Shown one piece after another: positions 22,684 to 42,054 of a DNA stretch of 64,000 nt. How positions within the stretch are numbered: position 1 is the stretch's first letter; every line of letters begins with the position of its first letter. The stretch is taken from IMG/VR virus record IMGVR_UViG_3300043410_001471, positions 124,001 through 188,000 of that record; one strand, given 5' to 3'. The position numbers and the translations under genes were made by a program. The notes under the pieces are model-generated. The model ran no database searches. It saw only the letters and a program-made list of their open reading frames with translations, and was not told the DNA's origin.

Positions 22684-24378
22684 ATGGCACTTAAATTTAG
22701 ACGTGGGACAACCGCACAAAAATCAGGTTCGTTAGCATTCGGAGAACCATATGTGAACACCACATTGGGGACATTACAAATCGGACTTGATACCGGAGAT
22801 GTAACACTTGCATCTTCAAATGGTTTAATTTCCGGCTCATCTCAATTGACAAGTTCTTATGATGAAAGATACGAAACACAGGGTAGAGGTATCATCTCAT
22901 CATCTGCGCAAATCGATTTATTGTTCGATATAGATGGTTTAGTTAGTGGTTCATCTCAAATCACTTTACAATCTACCACTGGATTTACTACATACGATTC
23001 AGCATTATCTACTATTACAGGTTCATTGATTAGTTCAGCTTCCGCTAATACTATATCAATAAATAATTTAAATTCATTTAGTGGGTCACAATTAACTCAA
23101 AATGCAAGTTTAGCAACGATTAGTGGTTCATTGATTAGTTCAGCATCAACTGCAAAAACTACAAATGATTCTCAAGATACTTCGATAGCAAATCTAAATT
23201 CATATACCTCTTCTTTACAAGCGGGTATTCAAATGACAGGTTCGACAGTTTCTTTCTTAGGAAATATCATAGTATATGGTACACAATCTGTAATCAATTC
23301 ACAAAATGTTTCGATTTCGGATAATATTCTTTATCTATCACCAACTGCATCTATTGATAATGATTTGGGTATTGTAGGACATTACAATGATGGAACATAT
23401 AGACACGCTGGTATCTTTATGGATGCTAGTGATGGTCATACTTGGAAAGTGTTTAATGGTTTAACTGATGAGACATCTGCGCAAGTAGATGTTAATGGTA
23501 ATGGATTTACATTAGCAGATTTCAAAGCAGGTGCAATTACAGGTACTTCATTCAATGGTACAATAAACGCAACAAATGGTGTAGTTTCCGGCTCATCTCA
23601 ATTAATTGGAATATTAGGTTCATTGAACACATATACAGGTTCAAATGATACTACTAATACGACACAAAATACAAGATTAACGGCATTAGAAGCATCAGCA
23701 TCTACTGCATTATCTACAAATAATACACAAGATACTTCAATTACAAATATAAATTCATTCACTTCTTCAATCAATACAACGATTAAGAATAAATTGAATA
23801 CCGAAACTGTAATTAGTGGTTCTTCGCAAGTTCAATTGGGTTCAGCAAGTGGTAATATCGCTTTAGCAACTCAAACAACAGGTGATTATGTTGCAAGTTT
23901 AGTAGCTGGTACGGGTGTAACAATTACAAATAATAGTGGAGAAAATGCAACTCCGACAATTGCAATTGGACAAGCGGTAGCAACTACATCAACACCAACA
24001 TTTGGTAATTTAACAATTAACGGAACTATCACGGCAACGGGTGATATTACCGCATACTATACTTCAGATAAAAGACATAAGAATAACATTCAAACTATAC
24101 CAAACGCTTTAGAGAAAGTATCTAAATTAAACGGTGTAACTTGGGAATGGAATGAAGATGTAAATGAAGTAACTAAATCAACACCTAAGACTGGTTTAAT
24201 CGCACAAGAAGTTCAGGAAGTTTTACCTGAAGTAGTTGTTGAAAGAGAAAATGGTTTCTTAGGATTAGACTATTCAAAAATGATGGGTCTAATGGTTGAG
24301 GCAATTAAAGAACAACAAACGCAAATACACAATTTAACTTTACAAATAGAAGAGTTAAAGAAGCAAAAAGGGTTATAA
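22684..24378 (+). CDS. Tail fibre with C-terminal intramolecular chaperone (peptidase S74)
   Basis: ITATGDITAYYTSDKRHKNNIQTIPNALEKVSKLNGVTWEW...GLIAQEVQEVLPEVV...LMVEAIKEQQ. Confidence 0.88.
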   Translation: MALKFRRGTTAQKSGSLAFGEPYVNTTLGTLQIGLDTGDVTLASSNGLISGSSQLTSSYDERYETQGRGIISSSAQIDLLFDIDGLVSGSSQITLQSTTGFTTYDSALSTITGSLISSASANTISINNLNSFSGSQLTQNASLATISGSLISSASTAKTTNDSQDTSIANLNSYTSSLQAGIQMTGSTVSFLGNIIVYGTQSVINSQNVSISDNILYLSPTASIDNDLGIVGHYNDGTYRHAGIFMDASDGHTWKVFNGLTDETSAQVDVNGNGFTLADFKAGAITGTSFNGTINATNGVVSGSSQLIGILGSLNTYTGSNDTTNTTQNTRLTALEASASTALSTNNTQDTSITNINSFTSSINTTIKNKLNTETVISGSSQVQLGSASGNIALATQTTGDYVASLVAGTGVTITNNSGENATPTIAIGQAVATTSTPTFGNLTINGTITATGDITAYYTSDKRHKNNIQTIPNALEKVSKLNGVTWEWNEDVNEVTKSTPKTGLIAQEVQEVLPEVVVERENGFLGLDYSKMMGLMVEAIKEQQTQIHNLTLQIEELKKQKGL

Positions 24379-27186: not shown

Positions 27187-29418
27187 ATGGCAGAAAAAAT
27201 AGTATCACCGGGAGTTTTTACAAAAGAAAACGACCTTTCATTTTTACAGCAAGGTGTAGCTGAAATCGGTGCAGCATTTATTGGTCCTTTTAAAGAAGGT
27301 CCGTTAGTTCCAACAATTGTTAATTCTCAAGCAGAATTCGAAACATTGTTTGGTTCGGTTGATGACACTTATTATACTCCTTTAGCAGTACAATCATATT
27401 TAAGAGAAGCAGGAACTGCAACAATTTGTAGAGTAGCAGGTATTGGTGGTTATACCGAAACCGCTCCTTTATTATTAACTGCAACTTCTGGTTCAGTAAG
27501 TGCATCTTTAGGTATTTTATTTAATACTTCAGGAAGTGCAAATGGTGGGTTTGCAACTGCATCTGTAACATCTTCAGCAGCAGGTGATTTCGTAATACAT
27601 GATGGATATGGTTCGCATATTTCAGCATCATTGGATGTAGCTGATACAAACGATATTGAAGCAGTATTTGGAACATCGGCATTTGGAGCTAAGAAAGCAT
27701 ATTCATATGGATTCTTTAAAAATTCATCTATAACTTTTGATTCAGCAGTTTCAGCATCTGTAACTGTATTAGGAAATCAATTGTTCACATTTGATGCACA
27801 AGAAGCATTGACACCAATGATTAAATCACAAACGATTAGTGGTGATAGATACGATTTATTCCAATTAGAAACTTTAGGAGCAGGTAATGCAGCAAATACT
27901 AAAGTTAAAATTGGTATTACAAATATTAAAGCAGCAGGTAGTGTAAATGGTACTGATTATGGTACATTCACTATTGTTGTAAGAGATTACGCTGATACAA
28001 ACAAAAAGAAAGCAGTATTAGAAACTTGGTCAAATGTTAATTTAGACCCTAACTCTCCTAACTTTATTAGTAGAGTAATCGGTGATAGAAAATTAACAAT
28101 TGATTCTGAAGGTAAAATAAGTGAAACAGGTGATTGGGTAAATAACTCAAAATATGTTAGAGTTGCAAACTTAAATGTAGCAGCTCCGGTACAAGCAGTT
28201 CCATTCGGACACGCAGCTTATACATTGCCAGTATCTGCATCAGCAGGTGTTGGGGCATTAATTCCATCTGTAACATTTGTAACTTCATCAGCAACACAAT
28301 ATGGTGGTATTGATTTAGATAACAATACTGACAACGCAATTTACTTAAAGCCAATTCCGACTGGAGCTGGTGTGGGTTCTAACTCCGTATTTGGATTAGA
28401 TGCATCAAATGGTGGTTCGTTATCAGTAGGTTCTACTTTAGCACAATTTGTTGTAGCATTCCAAGAAGGTTTTGATGGTGTAAATCCAGCAACTCCAATC
28501 TACAAAGGAAGTGATATATCAGCTGGAAACTCACAAGGTTTCAACTTATCTTCTTCAACTGCAAGTGGTTCAGTTGCATACGCTAAACATATCGCAGCAT
28601 TATCAAACGCAGATGAGTGGGATATTAATATGGTTGTAACTCCAGGTGTTATCAGAAGATTACACTCTTCAGTAGCAACTTCAGTATTGGATATGGTTGA
28701 AGCAAGAAATGATTGTTTCTACATTATGGACCAAACAGCGGCTGGTGATTCAATCTCACAAGCTACTACTCAATCTGACGCTGTAGATTCAAATATGGCA
28801 GCAACTTATTATCCTTGGATTAAGACTGTTGATACAAATACTAACAAATTAATTTCAGTTCCACCATCAGTATTATTACCTGGCGTATTCGCTTCTAACG
28901 ATAGAGTAGCAGCAGAATGGTTCGCACCAGCCGGTTTAAATAGAGGTGGTTTGACAGGAGCAGTTAGTGTATTGAATAGATTAACTCAATCTGAAAAAGA
29001 TACATTATATGAAGGAAAGGTAAACCCAATCGTTCAGTTCCCAGGACAAGGTATCGTAGTGTTCGGACAAAAAACATTACAAGATAAACCATCGGCATTG
29101 GATAGAATCAATGTAAGAAGATTATTATTAACTGTTAGAAAATACATCGCATCTACTTCGAGATATTTAGTGTTCGAACAAAACACATCAACTACTAGAA
29201 ATAGATTCTTAAATATTGTAAACCCTTATTTGGAATCAATCCAACAAAGACAAGGTTTATACGCATTTAGAGTTGTGATGGATGATTCAAACAACACACC
29301 GGATGTAATTGATAGAAACATTATGAAAGGGGCTATCTACTTACAACCAACTAAGACAGCTGAATTCATTCAAATCGATTTCAACATCTTACCAACTGGT
29401 GCAAGTTTTAACGGATAA
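27187..29418 (+). CDS. Tail sheath protein (gp18-like)
   Basis: IVSPGVFTKEND, ATYYPW, WFAPAGLNRG, GQKTLQ and DRINVRRLL motifs. Confidence 0.96.
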   Translation: MAEKIVSPGVFTKENDLSFLQQGVAEIGAAFIGPFKEGPLVPTIVNSQAEFETLFGSVDDTYYTPLAVQSYLREAGTATICRVAGIGGYTETAPLLLTATSGSVSASLGILFNTSGSANGGFATASVTSSAAGDFVIHDGYGSHISASLDVADTNDIEAVFGTSAFGAKKAYSYGFFKNSSITFDSAVSASVTVLGNQLFTFDAQEALTPMIKSQTISGDRYDLFQLETLGAGNAANTKVKIGITNIKAAGSVNGTDYGTFTIVVRDYADTNKKKAVLETWSNVNLDPNSPNFISRVIGDRKLTIDSEGKISETGDWVNNSKYVRVANLNVAAPVQAVPFGHAAYTLPVSASAGVGALIPSVTFVTSSATQYGGIDLDNNTDNAIYLKPIPTGAGVGSNSVFGLDASNGGSLSVGSTLAQFVVAFQEGFDGVNPATPIYKGSDISAGNSQGFNLSSSTASGSVAYAKHIAALSNADEWDINMVVTPGVIRRLHSSVATSVLDMVEARNDCFYIMDQTAAGDSISQATTQSDAVDSNMAATYYPWIKTVDTNTNKLISVPPSVLLPGVFASNDRVAAEWFAPAGLNRGGLTGAVSVLNRLTQSEKDTLYEGKVNPIVQFPGQGIVVFGQKTLQDKPSALDRINVRRLLLTVRKYIASTSRYLVFEQNTSTTRNRFLNIVNPYLESIQQRQGLYAFRVVMDDSNNTPDVIDRNIMKGAIYLQPTKTAEFIQIDFNILPTGASFNG

Positions 29419-29465: not shown

Positions 29466-29954
29466 ATGCCAGAAGTATTAGAATTCGACAAAATGTTTTA
29501 TACAAACTTCGAACCAAAGTTGGGAAACCGCTTTATTATGGAAATCGATGGTATAGAATCATATATGATAAAAACAGCTAATAGACCAACTTTCACATCA
29601 GAAATTGTTGAATTAGACCATATTAATGTAAAGAGAAAGATTAAAGGAAAATCCAATTGGGATGATTTAGAAATCACTCTTTATGACCCAATCGTTCCAT
29701 CGGGAGCACAGCAAGTGATGGAGTGGGTAAGACAATCACACGAATCTATCACAGGTAGAGATGGATACGCTTCTTTCTATAAGAAGGATATCACATTCTA
29801 TTTGTTAGGACCAGTAGGTGATAAAGTTGAACAATGGACTCTTAAAGGAGCATTCATTTCTTCAGCAAACTTTGGTGAATTGGATTGGGCTTCAAATGAC
29901 CCACTTTCAATATCTTTAACTTTAACATTTGATTACGCAATTCTTGAGTACTAA
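29466..29954 (+). CDS. Tail tube protein (gp19-like)
   Basis: FEPKLGNRFIMEIDGI...ITLYDPIVPSGAQQVMEW...WTLKGAF; directly after the sheath gene. Confidence 0.92.
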   Translation: MPEVLEFDKMFYTNFEPKLGNRFIMEIDGIESYMIKTANRPTFTSEIVELDHINVKRKIKGKSNWDDLEITLYDPIVPSGAQQVMEWVRQSHESITGRDGYASFYKKDITFYLLGPVGDKVEQWTLKGAFISSANFGELDWASNDPLSISLTLTFDYAILEY

Positions 29955-29983
29955 TCTTTAATTGTAAAACTTAAAATAATTAA

Positions 29984-30010
29984 GGGGTGTAGAAATACAT
30001 CCCTTTTTTT
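29984..30010 (+). terminator. Intrinsic terminator after the tube gene
   Basis: ggggtgta-GAAA-tacatccc followed by T7; same GTA-GAAA-TAC apex as the capsid terminator. Confidence 0.88.
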
Positions 30011-30058: not shown

Positions 30059-30100
30059 CTTGACTTTTGTCGTGAAATGTGTTACCTTTACTATGTAATA
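30059..30100 (+). promoter_or_regulatory. Host-RNAP (early) promoter, copy 1
   Basis: CTTG-N20-TACCTTTA, equivalently TTGACT-N17-TACCTT; shares TACCTTTACTATGTAATA with copy 2. Confidence 0.75.
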
Positions 30101-30127
30101 AGAGTTAAACATAAATCAATAATCATT

Positions 30128-30424
30128 ATGAACATTTCAGAATTAAATTTGACCGAATTAGAATCTAAAACCTTAACTGCTTTCACCGATTGTTTATACG
30201 CTGAACCTGGTTTCTCCGATGTGGATGTAAGTGATATTAGTGAGTGTACTGGTATTTCTACTAAAAGTATCAGAGGTGCTTTGGGTTCTTTGGTTAAAAA
30301 GGGAGTAGTTACCATTAACAAAAACGATGGTGGTTACGATATTATTGACCTTAATGTTCGTTACTGGCATTTAGTGAACGAAAGTTGGGCAGAAGAAGCT
30401 GAATATATTTTGAAAAATAATTAA
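30128..30424 (+). CDS. Small winged-HTH-like protein
   Basis: VDVSDISECTGISTKSIRGALGSLVKKGVV; the ATG at 30128 is preferred over the track start because it lies downstream of the promoter. Confidence 0.65.
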   Translation: MNISELNLTELESKTLTAFTDCLYAEPGFSDVDVSDISECTGISTKSIRGALGSLVKKGVVTINKNDGGYDIIDLNVRYWHLVNESWAEEAEYILKNN

Positions 30425-30696: not shown

Positions 30697-30715
30697 ACCT
30701 TAAAATATAAAAGTT

Positions 30716-30961
30716 ATGTCAAATTTTGAATTTACATTTAAAACAAATGCTGAATATATTGCAGCAAAAATTACGGGGTACATTGATGAATACAAATGTG
30801 TTAGAGTAGATACCATTTCATCGGAAGGTTGGAATATAGATTTTCCACTACATACCGAAGAGGAGTATAATGATTACTTATCAAATCATTCAAAAAATGG
30901 GGATAGAATTCTTAAAACCTATCCATCTACTACCTTTTACGAATCAAAGTGGAATTATTAA
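30716..30961 (+). CDS. Small hypothetical (early) protein
   Basis: A-rich start; ends just before the terminator. Confidence 0.6.
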   Translation: MSNFEFTFKTNAEYIAAKITGYIDEYKCVRVDTISSEGWNIDFPLHTEEEYNDYLSNHSKNGDRILKTYPSTTFYESKWNY

Positions 30962-30983
30962 AATTTTCATAATGTTTAAAAAT

Positions 30984-31015
30984 AAAGCAGTGGGGATATT
31001 CCTCACTGCTTTTTT
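30984..31015 (+). terminator. Intrinsic terminator closing the early island
   Basis: aaagcagtgggga-tat-tcctcactgcttt followed by T-run. Confidence 0.85.
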
Positions 31016-31055
31016 GTTTTATATATACTTATATATAAACATTAAGTTATTATTT

Positions 31056-31865
31056 ATGGAAGAAAATATCGAACAACAAGTTACAAGAGGATTGGGTTCT
31101 CAAAATTCACAAAGAACTTTCCCATTTCCAACAGAGGTTATTAGTTTACCATCAAAAGGTTTATGTTACCCAGAATCATCCCCACTATCTAAAGGAGAAA
31201 TTACAATCAAATTAATGACAGCTAAAGAAGAAGATATTCTTACTTCAGCAAATTTAATTAAAAAGGGTATCCATTTGGATAAATTATTGGAATCGGTAGT
31301 AGTTGAACCTGGTGTTAATATTAATGATTTATTAATTGGTGATAAAAACGCCATTTTAATAACATCTAGAATATTGGCATTTGGACCTGAATATACAGTA
31401 ACAGTATCAGACCCTGAAAGTGGACAACCAACCGAAGTTAATGTCGATTTATCTAAAATAAAAATAAAAGAAGTAGATGAATCATTGTTAAATAGACAAA
31501 ACGAATATAGTTTTGTACTACCTATTTCAAAAACGCCTATTAAGTTTAAGTTATTAACTCATAATGATGAAATCATAATCAATAAAGATATTGAAGCATC
31601 TGAAAAAGCATTAAAGCAAAGTAATGAGATAACTACAAGATATAGACGTATAATTATTGAAGTAGATGGTAATAGAGAAGTAGGTACTATTAGTAATTTC
31701 GTAGCAAATCGTTTATTAGCAGGTGATTCAAAAGCATTGAGAAAATACATAGCTTCAATTACACCTGATTTGGATTTAAAGTTTGATTATGAATCCCCAT
31801 TGACCGGTGAGAAGGAGGCTCTCCGAATCCCATTTGGGGTAGACTTTTTTTACCCTGCCGAATAA
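31056..31865 (+). CDS. Tail/baseplate-hub assembly chaperone (gp26/gp51-like; gpG equivalent)
   Basis: EVISLPSKG...MTAKEEDILTS...LLIGDKNAILI...RIPFGVDFFYP; the real start is the ATG at 31056, after the terminator and the TACTTATA motif. Confidence 0.8.
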   Translation: MEENIEQQVTRGLGSQNSQRTFPFPTEVISLPSKGLCYPESSPLSKGEITIKLMTAKEEDILTSANLIKKGIHLDKLLESVVVEPGVNINDLLIGDKNAILITSRILAFGPEYTVTVSDPESGQPTEVNVDLSKIKIKEVDESLLNRQNEYSFVLPISKTPIKFKLLTHNDEIIINKDIEASEKALKQSNEITTRYRRIIIEVDGNREVGTISNFVANRLLAGDSKALRKYIASITPDLDLKFDYESPLTGEKEALRIPFGVDFFYPAE

Positions 31866-32070
31866 CTACTCTGTAATATTACATCAGAAAATTTTTCAGA
31901 TGATTTACTTTGCTAATGGTGGATTTAATTGGCATGATTTATATTATATGCCTATTAAATTACGAGATTTTTATTGGAGAGAACTTCTTAAAACAAAAGA
32001 AGAAGAAAACGAAACAATTGAAGCTGCAAAATCTAAATCAAATAATTCTTCTAAAACGAGAAGAAGATGA
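31846..32070 (+). CDS. Overlapping +1-frame extension of the tail chaperone (gpT equivalent)
   Basis: FFTLPNNYSVILHQKIFQMIYFANGGFNWHDLYYMPIKLRDFYWRELLKTKEEENE...RRR*; 74 codons, absent from the ORF track. Confidence 0.75.
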   Translation, partial: FFTLPNNYSVILHQKIFQMIYFANGGFNWHDLYYMPIKLRDFYWRELLKTKEEENETIEAAKSKSNNSSKTRRR

Positions 32071-32102
32071 TATTTATAATAGTATTATAATATAAAAAAA
32101 TT

Positions 32103-32357
32103 ATGTCTAAACGAATATTAGTAAAAGAAGCCGGTTTAATGAATTTTTTCAAAAGCTTTTTTAAAGCAAAAGCTGATGGAAATGAAAGTGAATGGCTTCA
32201 AAAATTAAGAAAAGCTGACCCTAAGTTAGCAGATATATGGCATGATTATGATAAATCATTATCTAATGATATGAAGGTACAAAAAGCAGCTATGGATAGA
32301 TTGGGGTTAGATTCCAGTCATATAGATGATTTTACTAAACAATATGGTATAAAGTAA
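32103..32357 (+). CDS. Small hypothetical protein with head-protein-like leader
   Basis: Own TATTTATA at 32071; leader MSKRILVKE. Confidence 0.65.
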   Translation: MSKRILVKEAGLMNFFKSFFKAKADGNESEWLQKLRKADPKLADIWHDYDKSLSNDMKVQKAAMDRLGLDSSHIDDFTKQYGIK

Positions 32358-32369
32358 TCATTTTCTTAG

Positions 32370-35255
32370 ATGGCTAAACAAACACCCAAAGGTAAAGCAG
32401 GAGTTCCTAGACAGATAAGAGGTCTTGCACAAGATTCTGCAGCAGACTATAATTCATTAAGTCAGCAAGCCGATATATGGGATAAAATAAACAAAGCAAA
32501 AAAAGAAGGGCAAAAATACGATGAACGCGCATTAAAATATTTTGAAGAACAATATGGTTCTTTAAAAAATTTAAAAGATAAAGCGGATGATGTATTTAAA
32601 AAGTGGGAAAAATTTACCGATAAAATTGAAGATTCAAACGATACTATTAAAAAAGTATTAAATAATTTCGATGATATCGATGATACCATAGCAAGTATTG
32701 GAAATCAAATTGGTAAAAACAATAAATTATACGATACTTTTGCCACTCAATTAAAATCTACAAAAACATCAATGCAAAGTGTTTCCAACATTTTGCAAAA
32801 TTCATCAGATTTAACGGAAGGACAGGTAGAATCCGCTACAAATGCTGCTAAATCTTATAAAGATATGGGCATTTCCATTGCCAATGCTAGTAAAGAATTG
32901 CAAAATGGAAAAATAACTCAATCGGAATTTAATGATATTGTAAAAAAATCATATGAAAATTTTGAAGAATTATCTTCAAAAATTGATGATTCTACTGAAT
33001 CGGGTAAAGCATTATTAGAAATATTTGCAAGTGGTAAAGCAAAAGTAGATGCATTTAATGAATCGGCTAAAAAAAGTGCAGAATATTTAGATTCTATAAA
33101 TCAAACATTAGATACATTTGGAGGTTCGGGGATACCATTAGCTGGTCAAATGTCTGATGTGTTTAAGAAGATGGCAAATAAGGATGTGCCAGGACTTAAA
33201 GCAGGATTAGTTGCATTAGGGGCAGCAGCTGGTGCATTAGCAGCAAGTTATTTTGGCGCACCTATGCAAGTTGCAATTGAAACCTATTATGATAAACAAC
33301 AAAACATAATAGATGGAGCAAAAGAACTTGTAAAAATAAATAATGAGAGAGGATTCATACCACAAAAAATTGGATTAGAACTTTCTCAATCTCAAATTGA
33401 TAATCAGAACGAATTAAATAGATTAGGAGTAGAAAGAGAATTTGCAGCACAAAAAGCAGCAAATCAATTCAGTGCTACTATGAAATCTAATACGGCTGAA
33501 TTCCAAGCAGCATCAAAAACTGCATTATTTGGCAATTCTATTGGAAGTGTTTCATATGCAGCAGGTCAATTACAATTGGCAGGAGTTGGCGCAGAGCAAA
33601 TCGCAAGTTCTATGACAGCAGCTGCCGATGCTACTGGTAGAATGCCAACGGCTAAAATTGGGTCTGATATGGCTGTTTTACAAAGTAGAACAGGCGCTTC
33701 GGCTGAAAGTATAGCATCAATCAATGAGGCATACATGCGTATGGATGGGTTGAGTGCAGGAACGGCACTCAATATGCAAGAAGGATTGAGAGCAATGTCT
33801 GACCAAGCTAAAGTTAATTTAGGTGGGGTAATGGAGGAAATGGCAACCGCATCTAAAGATATGCTTGGATATCAAATCAAAAGCGCATCTGCATTATCAA
33901 AGCAAGTTATTTTTGCTAAATCAATGGGAGTTAGTTTTAATGATATAGCAAAGGCTGGGCAAGGTATGGTATTGAACTACAAAGATAGTATCAAATCAGA
34001 AATGCAGTTATCAGCTATGTTGGGTAAAAATGTAGACCTTTCAGAAGTAAGAGCTAAATTTGCAAGTGGTGATACATCCGGAGCAATAAGTGCATTAAAA
34101 GCGCAAGGTTTAGACCCTGCTAATATGGACATGTTCCAACAACAAATGTTGCAACAAGCGACTGGTATGGATTTAACTACTTTATCAAAGATAAATCAAA
34201 ATACAGGTAAATCGGTTAGTGCAGTAAGTGGAAATGTAAAAGCTGGTAATCAATCATTTTTAAGTAGAACTCAATCCGCTCAACAAACATTAGCTTCTCA
34301 ACAAGCTATAATATCAGCCGACCAAGCTATTGTAGATGCTAAATTATCTCAAAAAATTACCGAAGCATATTTAAAATCACCTGGATACCTTGCATATCAA
34401 AATTCATTGGCAGACCAACAAGCTAAGCAGGCTCAATTAAATACTCTTATTGAAGAAGCATTACTTAACAGTCCTCAAATGCAGGCTTTAAAAGCTCAAG
34501 AAAAGCAATTGAGTACTCAAAGAACTATTGGTGAAAATGTATTACCAACTGTAGGTGGAATTGCTGGTGGATTACTTACAAATAAACTTTTACCAAAAGC
34601 CGCTGGGGCAGGTGGAGGTCTTTTAAGTAAAGCCGGTGGATTTTTAGGAAAAGCTGGTGGTGGTATATTGGGAAAAGCTGGTGGATTATTGGGCAAAGTT
34701 GCAGCACCATTGATGATTGCAAAAGGACTTTATGATGGTTTTCAAGGATTTACAGCAGATAAAGATGCATCAACTGGTGATAAATTTCTTAATGCCGGTA
34801 GTAGTATATTAAGTGGATTGACATTTGGTTTACTTGGAAAGGATTCGGATACAATAAAAGCAGAAGCTGAAGCTAGAAAGAAAGGTAGTACTCCAGGAAC
34901 ATCTCCTGCTCCAACTGCTACTCAAGTAGCAGCTGCGACACCCGCTAATACTTCGGTTGCCGTTACGGATAAGTGGATGCAAGATAAACTTACCAAAATG
35001 AGTGGTAATTTGGAAAGAGTGGTTGATAGGACTCATAAAACTATGATGAATACTGCTCAATCTACCAAAGAATTACAAACTTTGAATGCAAATACAAAAG
35101 CAATGCTTACATTAACGAAAACAATCGAAGCATTGACTGTTGCAACCTATACAGGTACTGATAAAGCAGTTGTATTATCATTAGATGGTAAGCATATTGC
35201 AGCATCTTATACTAAGTACAAAGGAAATACTGAAGGTACTACACCTAAGAAATAA
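32370..35255 (+). CDS. Tape measure protein
   Basis: Long helical Ala/Gln/Lys-rich protein with GGxLGKAGG repeats, downstream of tube and chaperone genes. Confidence 0.8.
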   Translation: MAKQTPKGKAGVPRQIRGLAQDSAADYNSLSQQADIWDKINKAKKEGQKYDERALKYFEEQYGSLKNLKDKADDVFKKWEKFTDKIEDSNDTIKKVLNNFDDIDDTIASIGNQIGKNNKLYDTFATQLKSTKTSMQSVSNILQNSSDLTEGQVESATNAAKSYKDMGISIANASKELQNGKITQSEFNDIVKKSYENFEELSSKIDDSTESGKALLEIFASGKAKVDAFNESAKKSAEYLDSINQTLDTFGGSGIPLAGQMSDVFKKMANKDVPGLKAGLVALGAAAGALAASYFGAPMQVAIETYYDKQQNIIDGAKELVKINNERGFIPQKIGLELSQSQIDNQNELNRLGVEREFAAQKAANQFSATMKSNTAEFQAASKTALFGNSIGSVSYAAGQLQLAGVGAEQIASSMTAAADATGRMPTAKIGSDMAVLQSRTGASAESIASINEAYMRMDGLSAGTALNMQEGLRAMSDQAKVNLGGVMEEMATASKDMLGYQIKSASALSKQVIFAKSMGVSFNDIAKAGQGMVLNYKDSIKSEMQLSAMLGKNVDLSEVRAKFASGDTSGAISALKAQGLDPANMDMFQQQMLQQATGMDLTTLSKINQNTGKSVSAVSGNVKAGNQSFLSRTQSAQQTLASQQAIISADQAIVDAKLSQKITEAYLKSPGYLAYQNSLADQQAKQAQLNTLIEEALLNSPQMQALKAQEKQLSTQRTIGENVLPTVGGIAGGLLTNKLLPKAAGAGGGLLSKAGGFLGKAGGGILGKAGGLLGKVAAPLMIAKGLYDGFQGFTADKDASTGDKFLNAGSSILSGLTFGLLGKDSDTIKAEAEARKKGSTPGTSPAPTATQVAAATPANTSVAVTDKWMQDKLTKMSGNLERVVDRTHKTMMNTAQSTKELQTLNANTKAMLTLTKTIEALTVATYTGTDKAVVLSLDGKHIAASYTKYKGNTEGTTPKK

Positions 35256-37210: not shown

Positions 37211-39520
37211 ATGGGATTTCCGTATTTAGCGCCTCTTAAAGGTTGGGTGGTGGATGTACTAAAAGATAGAGAAGCATCTTATTCGGTTGGTGGTGATACC
37301 AATCCAATCAATAATCACTTAAAAATGCCTTGGGCAACATTAGTATCTGCTGCAAAAGTAACGCAAGTTAATGGTTTGAAGAAATTAGATGCAAAGGCTA
37401 GAGGTGAGGAATTGCAAAAAATAGTTTCTAGTAATTCATCCAATAGTAAAGATTTTTTTGGATGTATAATTAGAAATGATATAAATTCTACCGATTTATC
37501 ATATCAACAAACTGAAACAATAGTTGGTATAGATTTCAAAGGTGACCCAATCAAAGTAGTTGGAGAAAAAAATAAAAGAGTATCTACACCAATAATAGAA
37601 TCAATCGAAGTTGATACTGATGGTGCAAATAATACATTAAAAACAGCCAGAGTAAATGTTAAATGTTTTTCATTAAAACAATTTGAAATGTTTGAATTGT
37701 TTTTTTGTAAACCTGGCATGAATGTGTTGGTAGAATATGGTGATAATACTTTGGATGTGTATAGAGGTAATAAAAAGCCAAAAGATGCATATTCCAATTC
37801 AGCATATGTTTCGGGTCAATTATTTGATAAAACGAATTACAACGATTTTATAGAAAAATTTTCGGATTATTATAGATTTAATACCGCATCATTAAAAGTA
37901 TTTCAAAAGCATGTTGAAAAAGCATTGGGTTCATACGATTTGGTTGCTGGAAAAGTGACAGATTACTCATTTTCAATTGCGGAAGATGGTACATATAATG
38001 TTATGGTAGAAGTATCTCAAGGTAATCAAATGTCTTTAGCTATACCAATCAATATAGGTAATGAAAAATCAAAATTAGCTACTCAATCCGAAAAATCTAC
38101 ATTACAATGGGAACAATGGGTATCCCAATTGGTAGCAGATTTAAATATGGAAGCTGATAAATTCAAATCGAATGTTTCCAAAGAAGAAATAGAAAAGGAA
38201 TTTTTTAACTGGGGTAAGGTAAATGTTAAAAAGGAAGATGAAGTAGCATCAAATAATTCATATGTTAGTTTACGATTTATTTTAAAAAAATTAATGAATT
38301 ATTCATTGGATGAAAAGACGGGTGCATATAACCCTGATGATTTTCATTTTAGTATTCCAAAATATGATGTGGATGGTTCTCCCAAAGAATACATACCAAT
38401 TCGTTCTCATAAAAATATTATATCCACAAGTGAAGATGTAATTTTTCCAAACAAAGAAATGGTTAAATTCAGAGCACCGATAAAAGGGGATAAAGAGCAA
38501 GATAGTATTCAGATATCAAAAGATACCATAGATGGTTCTATAAATGGATATTCTATCAATGAAGGTAAAAGTGTAAAAAGTCCATTTGGTGGAATAATAA
38601 ATCCTAAATCCGATAAAGGGGATGTATGTGGAAATGCTTTGAATATTTTTGTAAATTATAAAATAATAGTACAAGCTTGGAAAGCATCATACAGTAGGAA
38701 AGATTTTTTATTGGCAATATTGAATACCATAAATGGCACATCTTTGGGTAAATTTAGACTTACATTGAATTCATATGTGGAAGGTTCAACTGCCACTGTT
38801 ATGGATTACACATCTATGCATGATACTAAAATAGAGCAGGAGAAAATATATAAATTTAAAATTAATACATTGGAATCGAATGTAAGAAATTTTAGTTTTA
38901 ATTTTGAAATGAGTAATTTAGTAGCAGGTAGAACTGTATTCAATTCTCAAAGGTTTTTAGTAAATGCATTAAAAAAATTGGATAAAAATAAAGAAGTATC
39001 CAATATATCACTACCACCCGAAGTTTATCAGGAATTTGATAATTCATTAATGAGTAATGCAGATGGATTCTTTTCAGTAAATATGATTGAATTAAAAGCA
39101 TTAGAAAAAAATTATAAAGAAGCTGTTGAAAAAAAGAGAGCACCTGGGGAAGATAAAAAGGATGAAGAATCAAATGAAGCTAAAAACTATACCGAAATAG
39201 TTGAACAAAAATCGATTAAATTTAAAAAAACGAAAAATGGTGATATTAAACCATTAATATTTACGGATGTAGATTTAATTAAAAAATATGTTGCTTCACC
39301 GGAAGAGGATAAAAAAAGTATATTGACTCCAATTGATATTACAATTACTATCGATGGTATGAGTGGATTTAGTTGTGGTGAGTATTTTTGTGTGAATGGT
39401 GTGCCTGAAATATACAATCAAATAGGTGTGTTTCAAATTACAAATGTTAAACATAATGTTTCAAACGATGGGTGGACAACCACAATTGAAGCTGGATTTA
39501 GAATAACTCCATTAAATTAA
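37211..39520 (+). CDS. Baseplate hub-like protein
   Basis: PGMNVLVEYG and ITITIDGMSGFSCGEYF...FQITNVKHNVSNDGWTTTIEA motifs, similar to gpD/gp27-type hubs. Confidence 0.6.
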   Translation: MGFPYLAPLKGWVVDVLKDREASYSVGGDTNPINNHLKMPWATLVSAAKVTQVNGLKKLDAKARGEELQKIVSSNSSNSKDFFGCIIRNDINSTDLSYQQTETIVGIDFKGDPIKVVGEKNKRVSTPIIESIEVDTDGANNTLKTARVNVKCFSLKQFEMFELFFCKPGMNVLVEYGDNTLDVYRGNKKPKDAYSNSAYVSGQLFDKTNYNDFIEKFSDYYRFNTASLKVFQKHVEKALGSYDLVAGKVTDYSFSIAEDGTYNVMVEVSQGNQMSLAIPINIGNEKSKLATQSEKSTLQWEQWVSQLVADLNMEADKFKSNVSKEEIEKEFFNWGKVNVKKEDEVASNNSYVSLRFILKKLMNYSLDEKTGAYNPDDFHFSIPKYDVDGSPKEYIPIRSHKNIISTSEDVIFPNKEMVKFRAPIKGDKEQDSIQISKDTIDGSINGYSINEGKSVKSPFGGIINPKSDKGDVCGNALNIFVNYKIIVQAWKASYSRKDFLLAILNTINGTSLGKFRLTLNSYVEGSTATVMDYTSMHDTKIEQEKIYKFKINTLESNVRNFSFNFEMSNLVAGRTVFNSQRFLVNALKKLDKNKEVSNISLPPEVYQEFDNSLMSNADGFFSVNMIELKALEKNYKEAVEKKRAPGEDKKDEESNEAKNYTEIVEQKSIKFKKTKNGDIKPLIFTDVDLIKKYVASPEEDKKSILTPIDITITIDGMSGFSCGEYFCVNGVPEIYNQIGVFQITNVKHNVSNDGWTTTIEAGFRITPLN

Positions 39521-40785: not shown

Positions 40786-42054
40786 ATGAATTTAATAGAA
40801 ACTAAATCTGCCCTACATTTTTTTGTCAAATCAAATCCAACAATCGATTTGATAGTACCAGTATGGAGTTCTCACAAAGCACATCCATTTATGAATCGTA
40901 TATCGTTTATCTATTATAGATTGAACGATAATAGTGATGGTATAATAAACATCAATCACATCGATGCAAAGAAGATTGAAAAGTTTCCAATAGATGGACT
41001 GGTTGGTGAAAATACAATCGTATATGGAAGTAGATATGTAGCAACAAAAGGACTTGATTATGAGTGGGTATACTTTGAACAATATGGTAAACCCTTCATA
41101 TTCAGCGAGTTCGCTGAATCGGTTTATAAGGGGTATAGAATCGATTATAAAGAGTTGAATGATTGTATTCCTCTAATGAAGTGGTATGAGGTGTTAAAAG
41201 CAATGCCTGTACCAAATACGATTACTCAATCATCAATCACATATTCTTCAGCTATCCGAACACTTGGGAGGCTGGAGGGGGCTGGGGTGAAAGTCGAAGA
41301 AGAAAAATTTATTGATAGTTTTAGCCTTTCTAAAGATTACATCAAAAGAGGATTGGTGTTCACACAATACAATCCATATACAACAACGGGTAGACCTTCC
41401 AATAGACACTTAAACATTAACTACTCTGCCTTAAACAAATCGGATGGGAGTAGGGGGTGCTTCGTTAGTAGGAATCCAAAGGGAACTCTCTTACAATTTG
41501 ATTACGAATCTTATCACATACGATTGATTGCCAAATTGGTTGGATATGAATTTCCTAAAGGGGTTACCGCTCACCAACACCTTGCCGACTTATATGGATG
41601 TGATTACGAAACTGCGAAGAAGGTAACCTTTACATATTTGTATGGGGGGTTAGATGATAACGCTCGAAGAATTCCGTTCTTTCAAAAGGTAGAGGGGTAC
41701 ATTAGGGAACTATACCAAAAGTTCGTAATTTCGGGTCGTTTAACGACTCCTCTCTATAAGAGGGAAATCCATTTCTCAAAAATTGAAGGAGCGACTGAAC
41801 AAAAGGTATTCAACTATTTGTTACAGGCGTTAGAAACTGAAGTGAACTATATGAAGATTGAGAAGGTGTTGGATTTACTGAATGGTAAAATGAGTAAAAT
41901 GATTTTGTACACCTACGATGCGTTTCTTATAGATGTTCATCCTGTTGAAAGGGATTGGGTTTTGAGTGAAGTGAAAAGGATTATGGAGGTAGGTGGATTC
42001 CCTGTCAAAGTTGAAGAGGGAAGTAATTATGATAATTTAGTTGGAATAGAATAA
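40786..42054 (+). CDS. Divergent, compact family A DNA polymerase-like protein
   Basis: TTTGRPS, motif A FDYESYHIRLI, motif B AKKVTFTYLYG, NYLLQ, motif C YTYDAFL. Confidence 0.8.
   Translation: MNLIETKSALHFFVKSNPTIDLIVPVWSSHKAHPFMNRISFIYYRLNDNSDGIININHIDAKKIEKFPIDGLVGENTIVYGSRYVATKGLDYEWVYFEQYGKPFIFSEFAESVYKGYRIDYKELNDCIPLMKWYEVLKAMPVPNTITQSSITYSSAIRTLGRLEGAGVKVEEEKFIDSFSLSKDYIKRGLVFTQYNPYTTTGRPSNRHLNINYSALNKSDGSRGCFVSRNPKGTLLQFDYESYHIRLIAKLVGYEFPKGVTAHQHLADLYGCDYETAKKVTFTYLYGGLDDNARRIPFFQKVEGYIRELYQKFVISGRLTTPLYKREIHFSKIEGATEQKVFNYLLQALETEVNYMKIEKVLDLLNGKMSKMILYTYDAFLIDVHPVERDWVLSEVKRIMEVGGFPVKVEEGSNYDNLVGIE

Follow-up and report, generated by a model that had tools for sequence, protein, structure and literature searches.

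In the stretch of DNA analysed here (hereafter the window: 64,000 nucleotides (nt), bases 124001-188000 of the 245,436-bp IMG/VR record IMGVR_UViG_3300043410_001471, which carries direct terminal repeats), a tail gene related to T4 gene 26 ends in two overlapping reading frames that meet at a run of seven T's (T7). The comparative analysis of its relatives suggests that this gene probably carries a genuine recoding signal of the gpG/gpGT type, most likely expressed through a +1 ribosomal frameshift. The kind of event is a known one, that is, the tail-assembly-chaperone frameshift; what would be new is its occurrence in the T4 gp26 family and its +1 direction at a UUU_Y site. The elements on which the argument is built are the following:

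31056-31865, + strand: the 0-frame gene "A", a T4 gp26-like tail assembly chaperone of 269 amino acids (aa), recognised through PF12322, phrog_150 and the fold of its AlphaFold2 (AF2) model
31814-31818, + strand: a GGAGG that resembles a Shine-Dalgarno sequence and is conserved 31 nt 5' of the run
31827-31840, + strand: a small hairpin with a UCCC/GGGR stem, ending 4 nt 5' of the run; a terminator scan flags hairpin and run together as terminator-like
31845-31851, + strand: the slippery T7 run, TTT TTT T in the 0 frame (Phe-Phe, with its last T opening the Tyr codon), without variation across the 74 distinct junctions
31846-32070, + strand: the putative +1-frame extension "B", 74 codons plus TGA, recognised from its translation and from homologous +1 frames in related loci

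The 3' end of the 0-frame gene reads ...GTA GAC TTT TTT TAC CCT GCC GAA TAA, with the stop TAA at 31863-31865; both this end and the position of the T7 run had been given exactly by the first-pass annotation of this DNA, which had proposed a chaperone frameshift in the +1 or -2 direction. The entry 30870-31865 in the list of open reading frames (ORFs) is over-extended: relatives align from the Met of ATG 31056, the likeliest start, which is preceded by a strong terminator-like hairpin of 13 bp (30984-31012). The run contains two overlapping UUU_U sites. The +1 frame is shut by a TAG at 31840-31842 and is then open from 31843 to the TGA at 32068-32070, that is, for 75 codons, or for the 74 already reported when the count starts from the run, and it overlaps the 0 frame by 23 nt only, with the T7 run inside the overlap. 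As had also been remarked, this frame is missed by the ORF list, which shows only its ATG-started part (31900-32070, 56 aa), and the -1 frame (CTT TTT TTA CCC TGC CGA ATA ACT ACT CTG TAA) closes almost at once, after 10 codons. A run of this kind is not unusual by itself in an AT-rich window (61 T7/A7 runs observed vs 109 expected, both strands), so that its significance derives from its conservation across relatives. As a separate observation on composition, T7 on the sense (+) strand is about five times rarer (11 positions, several of them intergenic) than A7 (about 50) across the window, and further T7 runs lie within window genes at 37453, 37700, 40818, 48701 and 54324.

The evidence that carries the finding comes from these relatives. 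A scan of IMG/VR yielded 597 confirmed relatives, the best 80 of which (48-91% identity), embedding 74 distinct junctions, were kept. All 80 related contigs either harbor an open +1-frame extension after the Phe-Phe site or end there, and in 78 of these tblastn placed a homologue of B in the +1 frame, with alignments beginning at B residue 1-3, that is, at the run. The T7 is retained at 79 of the 80 loci (the exception, L040, reads TTC TTT T), and no variation is seen in any of the seven T columns of the 74 distinct junctions; both Phe codons of the slip site are TTT in each of these, vs 76% TTT elsewhere in the same genes (naive P ~1e-22). The highest column entropy moves from the 0-frame third positions 5' of the run to the +1-frame third positions 3' of it, and this phase switch is already present between the run and the ATG at 31900 of the window. 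In agreement with this, conservation extends to the +1-frame residues that precede the ATG (FFTLP.NYS..LH; at least 90% of the sequences of alignment A2 have His13). Taken on the sequences, the whole pattern argues that the extension is selected as a protein from the slip site onward. The alignment of relatives that the first-pass annotation had proposed as a check has therefore come out in favor of both the T7 and the overlapping frame. An in-frame A-B fusion does not occur among the 120 best database homologues; all of these cover only the first 78-79% of the fusion, and PF12322 is present in all the 120 listed. A DNA search of the phage collection with positions 30700-32400 gave no match, and further IMG/VR scans seeded with the proteins of the phages XacN1 and SP-15 yielded nothing new.

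The two-frame layout with its slip site is kept, besides the 80 loci, in nine cultured phages, and the direction of the shift that it would require differs among the relatives, as follows:

Mel-JY01: +1, slip site AAC TTT TTT TGG
RM378: +1, slip site TCC TTT TTT TGG
SP-15: +1, slip site GAA TTT TTT CAC
LIS04: +1, slip site GAG TTT TTT AGT
GXN1 and HSE3: +1, slip site GAR TTC TTT CGT
immuto clade, 43 distinct junctions: +1, slip sites TTT CTT TGG/TAC (21), TTT CTA TGG (3) and TTT TTT TGG (19)
PA5oct (L092), Atu_ph07 (L093), 121Q (L094), RaK2 (L095) and CBB (L096): -1, at T_TTT_TTC
Rhizobium phage LG08 (L177) and Cronobacter phage LPCS28 (L178; Straboviridae): -1, at T_TTT_TTC
XacN1 (L090): -1 extension, at T_TTT_TTT, with a T7

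The sole element common to all the +1-frame members examined is UUU_Y, at which +1 re-pairing is cognate. The -1 members are phages of Proteobacteria, mostly jumbo, and embed an unannotated extension of 65-86 codons on the same Phe-Phe motif, with the heptamer T_TTT_TTC (T_TTT_TTT in XacN1) in the exact X_XXY_YYZ phase; part of this extension is usually called as a separate small hypothetical ORF. Among the sampled phages, -1 occurs in phages of Proteobacteria and +1 elsewhere. None of the cultured-phage records examined annotates A and the extension as joined, and gene callers or GenBank records list parts of the extensions as small separate ORFs. With T_TTT_TTC on these very Phe-Phe codons in the -1 relatives, ribosomal recoding at this position is, as judged from the sequences, a trait of the family. 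T4 itself, for which no frameshift was known according to the first-pass annotation, has indeed no open extension: its gp26 (L086, 2803-3429, minus strand) ends ...KEFFELL* (GAG TTC TTT GAG TTA CTA TAA), three residues after an E-F-F motif at which neither alternative frame is open, and gene 25 comes next. In the T4 record, an internal start is given for a further product, 26'. The extension is likewise missing in Aeromonas phage B614, and has apparently been lost by T4 and its close relatives.

As for the upstream protein, A matches the Pfam family PF12322 (T4_baseplate, the T4 gp26 family) with an E-value of 4.1e-9 and 36.9 bits vs a cutoff of 24.5, and phrog_150 "baseplate hub" with 1.7e-11. 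PF12322 homologues are usually annotated "baseplate hub subunit", and T4 gp26 is listed as "hub assembly chaperone" (PMC3004832). It is the Pfam profile that provides the link to T4 gp26, since BLASTP of the A-B fusion against this protein is insignificant and the profile of the A alignment (A3) misses it; a sequence search of the PDB gave no match for either A or the extension. The two parts were folded separately, and the model of A was compared exhaustively with 48,161 PDB representatives. The AF2 model of A (predicted local distance difference test, pLDDT, 86.9; predicted template modeling score, pTM, 0.82) best matches 3fgx (Z 6.4, residues 17-118), followed by 3klu/YqbN (Z 5.0, residues 148-237) and by 2ob9, the HK97 tail assembly chaperone (Z 4.6, residues 80-240), and these are precisely the three known structures of phage tail assembly chaperones, as named in PMC9603447; 2ob9 is also picked by Foldseek (probability 0.60, E 0.69). 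These top three matches fall on two successive parts of the model, which suggests that A might possess a tandem tail-assembly-chaperone (TAC)-like architecture. In BFVD, 68 structural matches to A at E <= 1e-3 come from many myoviruses, and most of those that carry a name are called "baseplate hub subunit", "assembly protein" or "assembly chaperone". The label of chaperone originally given to this gene is thus in agreement with the predicted TAC-like fold and can be refined to that of a T4 gp26 homologue. Some of the BFVD relatives are far longer than 270 aa (A0A8S5RZL9, 430 aa; G4KKH9, 475 aa; I1VX76, 517 aa), and these could be natural in-frame fusions with the extension or with other domains.

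The extension is modeled as three helices (pLDDT 84). It has no match in Pfam or PHROG even at E 10, and Foldseek against BFVD returned weak matches only, without named relatives; these include small ORFs adjoining gp26-like genes, recognised by their adjacent accession numbers. The extension profile of the window clade finds the +1-frame ORFs of cultured phages with E-values from 3e-28 (Mel-JY01) to 1e-4 (SP-15) and does not reach XacN1 or RM378, whose extensions are likened to it by eye and by position only. The gpG/gpGT-type recoding suggested by the first-pass annotation is supported, therefore, by two frames and a T run conserved in 80 contigs, by a second frame conserved from the run onward, and by a predicted fold of the upstream protein that resembles, at modest Z, the tail assembly chaperones.

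On this basis, we suggest that most ribosomes would stop at the TAA at 31863 and release the 269-aa protein, while a minority would slip by +1 as tRNA-Phe decodes UUU UUU U, moving from one UUU to the overlapping UUU of a UUU_Y site. The shifted ribosomes would then read the +1 frame to the TGA at 32068, adding 72 new residues (TLPNNYS...) to give a 337-aa A-B fusion with the junction ...GVDFF-TLPNNYS.... Sites of the form UUU_Ynn are described as "especially prone to +1 frameshifting" in bacteria (PMC5009743). Slipping by +1 at the first UUU would leave the product of the TTT CTT T variants with Phe-Phe, just as in the T7 variants, and that of the TTT CTA T variants with Phe-Tyr. The predicted tryptic peptides are IPFGVDFFTLPNNYSVILHQK for the +1 junction, IPFGVDFFFTLPNNYSVILHQK for a -2 junction and IPFGVDFFYPAE for the unshifted product. 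By analogy with lambda gpG/gpGT, the A part common to both products would coat the tape measure protein, and the three helices added at the C-terminus of the fusion would form a small domain that recruits either the tube protein or the hub; the two products would be made in a ratio determined by a constant frequency of slippage. We infer the occurrence of the shift, its ribosomal +1 nature, its efficiency and the binding partners of its products, and the function of the extension is proposed by analogy.

The surroundings of the run were inspected for elements that might stimulate such a shift. The GGAGG is found exactly at -31 in 57 of the 74 distinct junctions, over a background of 0.27 per kb, and is kept despite strong codon bias (GAG represents only 16% of Glu codons, and third-position G only 9% elsewhere). 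The hairpin at 31827-31840 has 88% of its cells paired across relatives; with one covarying pair only, this is weak evidence, and the pairing is largely accounted for by Pro and Gly codons. RNAalifold detected no consensus structure upstream of the run, and downstream of it single-sequence folds are weak in the window's own clade. A covarying structure characterizes one sub-clade (L061-L080), in which a GC hairpin of 6 bp, absent from the window's own clade, begins 5 nt 3' of the run (carriers: L061, L063-L066, L069, L071, L076, L077, L079 and L080); three of its six pairs show compensatory changes, no pair is ever broken, and its 9-nt loop holds the 0-frame stop codon. A downstream hairpin can pause a ribosome and cannot act on a polymerase that has yet to transcribe it, and this favors a ribosomal shift.

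Several points weigh against a +1 ribosomal shift in a gpG-type chaperone. The window's own T7 permits three routes into the +1 frame, that is, a +1 slip of tRNA-Phe and, equally, a -2 slip or the loss of one U by the RNA polymerase; all seven T's are conserved, more than the four that UUU_Y needs; no stimulatory structure is common to the whole clade; the spacer of 26 nt between GGAGG and the run exceeds that of known Shine-Dalgarno-type stimulators; a rare or slow 0-frame A-site codon was not demonstrated; and the fold matches of A are modest, all with Z < 7.

A first alternative is transcriptional slippage: the RNA polymerase, possibly helped by the upstream hairpin, would drop one U on the T7 and generate a minority of U6 messenger RNAs that join A and B into a single frame, their translation being standard. 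A homopolymer of exactly seven in 79 of 80 loci, beyond what UUU_Y would need, fits this idea, as do the terminator-like combination of hairpin and run, with the high proportion of paired positions mentioned above, and the fact that a T run serves both +1 and -1 (the latter in XacN1, with its T7), as would be expected from the loss or the gain of a U. However, the arrangement persists in relatives whose runs are interrupted (TTC TTT C/T, TTT CTT T and TTT CTA T) and on which such slippage could not take place; the T_TTT_TTC of the -1 clade is placed exactly as an X_XXY_YYZ ribosomal heptamer; the covarying hairpin that one sub-clade has 3' of the run is consistent with a ribosomal stimulator; and the upstream hairpin consists largely of Pro and Gly codons. 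We regard transcriptional slippage as unlikely, although it retains some plausibility.

A -2 ribosomal frameshift, in which the tRNA-Phe on the second UUU would move back by two bases to give ...DFFF-TLP... and so add one Phe, following the model proposed for phage Mu, had been put forward in the first-pass annotation side by side with the +1 slip. The T7 would indeed allow perfect re-pairing two bases back, using more of the run than a +1 slip does, and -2 shifts are known for tail chaperone genes (PMC5009743). Such a shift is mechanistically rarer, however, and re-pairing would be mismatched in the TTC TTT C/T and TTT CTA T relatives, whereas at +1 it is cognate. Since these relatives permit only the slip from UUU to UUY, the +1 alternative of the two originally proposed is the favored one, and the -2 slip appears quite improbable. 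The preference for a ribosomal +1 shift over both transcriptional slippage and a -2 slip is based, therefore, on the interrupted runs, on the downstream hairpin of the sub-clade and on the phase of the -1 heptamer.

The possibility that no recoding occurs at all, and that the second frame is a small independent gene translated from ATG 31900 or reached by termination and reinitiation after the TAA at 31863, may be entertained since an ATG-started ORF of 56 aa does exist and such small ORFs are present in gene calls and GenBank records. Nevertheless, the conserved +1-frame residues begin at the run, upstream of the ATG, and it is at the run that the phase of the variability switches; the position of the first ATG of the extension varies among loci, this codon is missing in four of them (L046, L047, L072 and L081), and no Shine-Dalgarno sequence precedes ATG 31900. 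As the run, the frame and the pre-ATG residues are conserved, an independent start is very unlikely, and so is a sequencing error. Indeed, even though homopolymers are error-prone in assemblies, an artefact or a pseudogene, the true gene being a single frame with a T6, is hardly credible given the same T7 and two-frame layout in 79 independent assemblies and in cultured phage genomes and the lack of any in-frame fusion among the 120 best database homologues.

The genes around the putative frameshift site lie all on the + strand, and their order is in agreement with a role in tail assembly. The neighboring features of the window are the following:

22684-24378, + strand: tail fibre-like protein
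27187-29418, + strand: tail sheath gene (PF04984 and PF17482; phrog_23, 5.8e-68)
29466-29954, + strand: tail tube gene (PF06841, T4 gp19, 1.6e-9; phrog_4542, 9.5e-32)
between the tube gene and the chaperone gene, + strand: three small ORFs
32103-32357, + strand: small ORF between the extension and the putative tape measure gene
32370-35255, + strand: putative tape measure gene, 961 aa (weak match to phrog_167, 2.9e-4; the syntenic gene is annotated tape measure in immuto, LIS04 and HSE3)
3' of the putative tape measure gene, + strand: baseplate-like genes

The location between the tube and tape measure genes reported by the first-pass annotation is thus correct. The order sheath, tube, PF12322 gene, tape measure is shared by the window and its cultured relatives, and that of the tube gene, the PF12322 gene and the tape measure gene is identical in immuto, Mel-JY01, SP-15, LIS04 and HSE3. 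The assignment to a T4-related myovirus holds as far as the T4-like tail genes are concerned; the source genome is that of a 245-kb phage rather than that of a close relative of T4.

Other observations concern the same region. Two strong terminator-like hairpins with T tails are found at 29982-30005, 3' of the tube gene, and at 30984-31012, just 5' of the gp26-like gene, so that chaperone, extension and tape measure may constitute their own transcription unit. Between the tube and chaperone genes, an ORF of 115 aa (30077-30424) shows weak winged-helix matches (TrmB, DnaD_N, MarR); a DNA-binding protein would be oddly placed there. In or just after the tail module, the last ~110 residues of a 422-aa ORF (40786-42054) match the DNA polymerase family phrog_17 (2.9e-11). 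No tRNA genes were found within the 64-kb window.

A broader scenario may be advanced, although only tentatively and with considerable doubt. According to it, the part of the G/GT-type chaperone would be played in T4-type contractile tails by the gp26 "baseplate hub" family; the ancestor of this family would already have recoded at the Phe-Phe motif, the direction having flipped between -1 at U_UUU_UUC (phages of Proteobacteria) and +1 at UUU_UUU_Y (Bacteroidota, Cyanobacteria, Firmicutes, Rhodothermus and the window clade); T4 would have lost the extension; and with the +1 form UUU_Y would for the first time be seen in a widely conserved, programmed role, possibly assisted by a distant (26-nt) Shine-Dalgarno-like stimulator of a new kind. 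The data suggest, in any case, that T4-type tails may have the same device as other long tails, hidden in genes annotated "baseplate hub subunit". In that case, one protein product would be missing from the annotation of many phage genomes (RaK2-like, PA5oct, Atu_ph07, SP-15, cyanophage and flavophage), and a testable function would be offered for T4 gp26, whose role has so far been unclear. A single family whose lineages differ, shifting by either -1 or +1 on the same two codons, would also be a natural system for the study of the direction and efficiency of slippage, and it would provide a conserved natural example of the +1 shift at UUU_Y, of which few programmed cases are known.

It remains to compare this gene with the systems already described. 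The tail-assembly-chaperone frameshift of lambda gpG/gpGT and its analogues is conserved (Xu, Hendrix and Duda 2004, as reviewed in PMC5009743) and is regarded as near-universal in long-tailed phages "except T4" (PMC5009743); our literature search, which did not take in most subscription journals, turned up no link between a frameshift and either gp26 or PF12322. As in lambda, two overlapping ORFs lie 3' of the tube gene and just 5' of the tape measure gene, the slippery site falls a few codons before the first stop and the extension is a small domain; moreover, the predicted fold of A resembles, with modest scores, the HK97, YqbN and Rbstp2171 chaperones. Unlike in lambda, the shift would be +1 instead of -1, and A, a member of the T4 gp26 family, is about twice as long (269 aa, with two predicted TAC-like domains). 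With T4 gp26, A shares a Pfam match above the gathering score, a fold family in common with "baseplate hub subunit" proteins (BFVD) and an end near F-F; in contrast to the window gene, T4 gene 26 has no extension in either frame and is located elsewhere than between the tube gene and the tape measure gene. A different comparison is that with phage Mu (-2) and the haloarchaeal myovirus HSTV-2 (+1), whose tail chaperone frameshifts are likened here by description as routes other than -1 that lead to the +1 frame in phages with contractile tails (PMC5009743). Finally, shift-prone UUU_Y sites have been described by Schwartz and Curran (1997), proposed for Yersinia yopN-tyeA (UUU_UGG), where the hybrid protein was still made after mutation of the site (PMC3789692), and reported for influenza PA-X (UUU_CGU) (cited in PMC5009743 and PMC3789692). 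The sites analyzed in this work have the same tetranucleotide, read UUU_UGG, UUU_UAC or UUU_CGU in the different sub-clades and would allow perfect +1 re-pairing of tRNA-Phe; unlike the known UUU_Y sites, they are conserved across hundreds of phage lineages and, in the case of the window, embedded in a T7 run.

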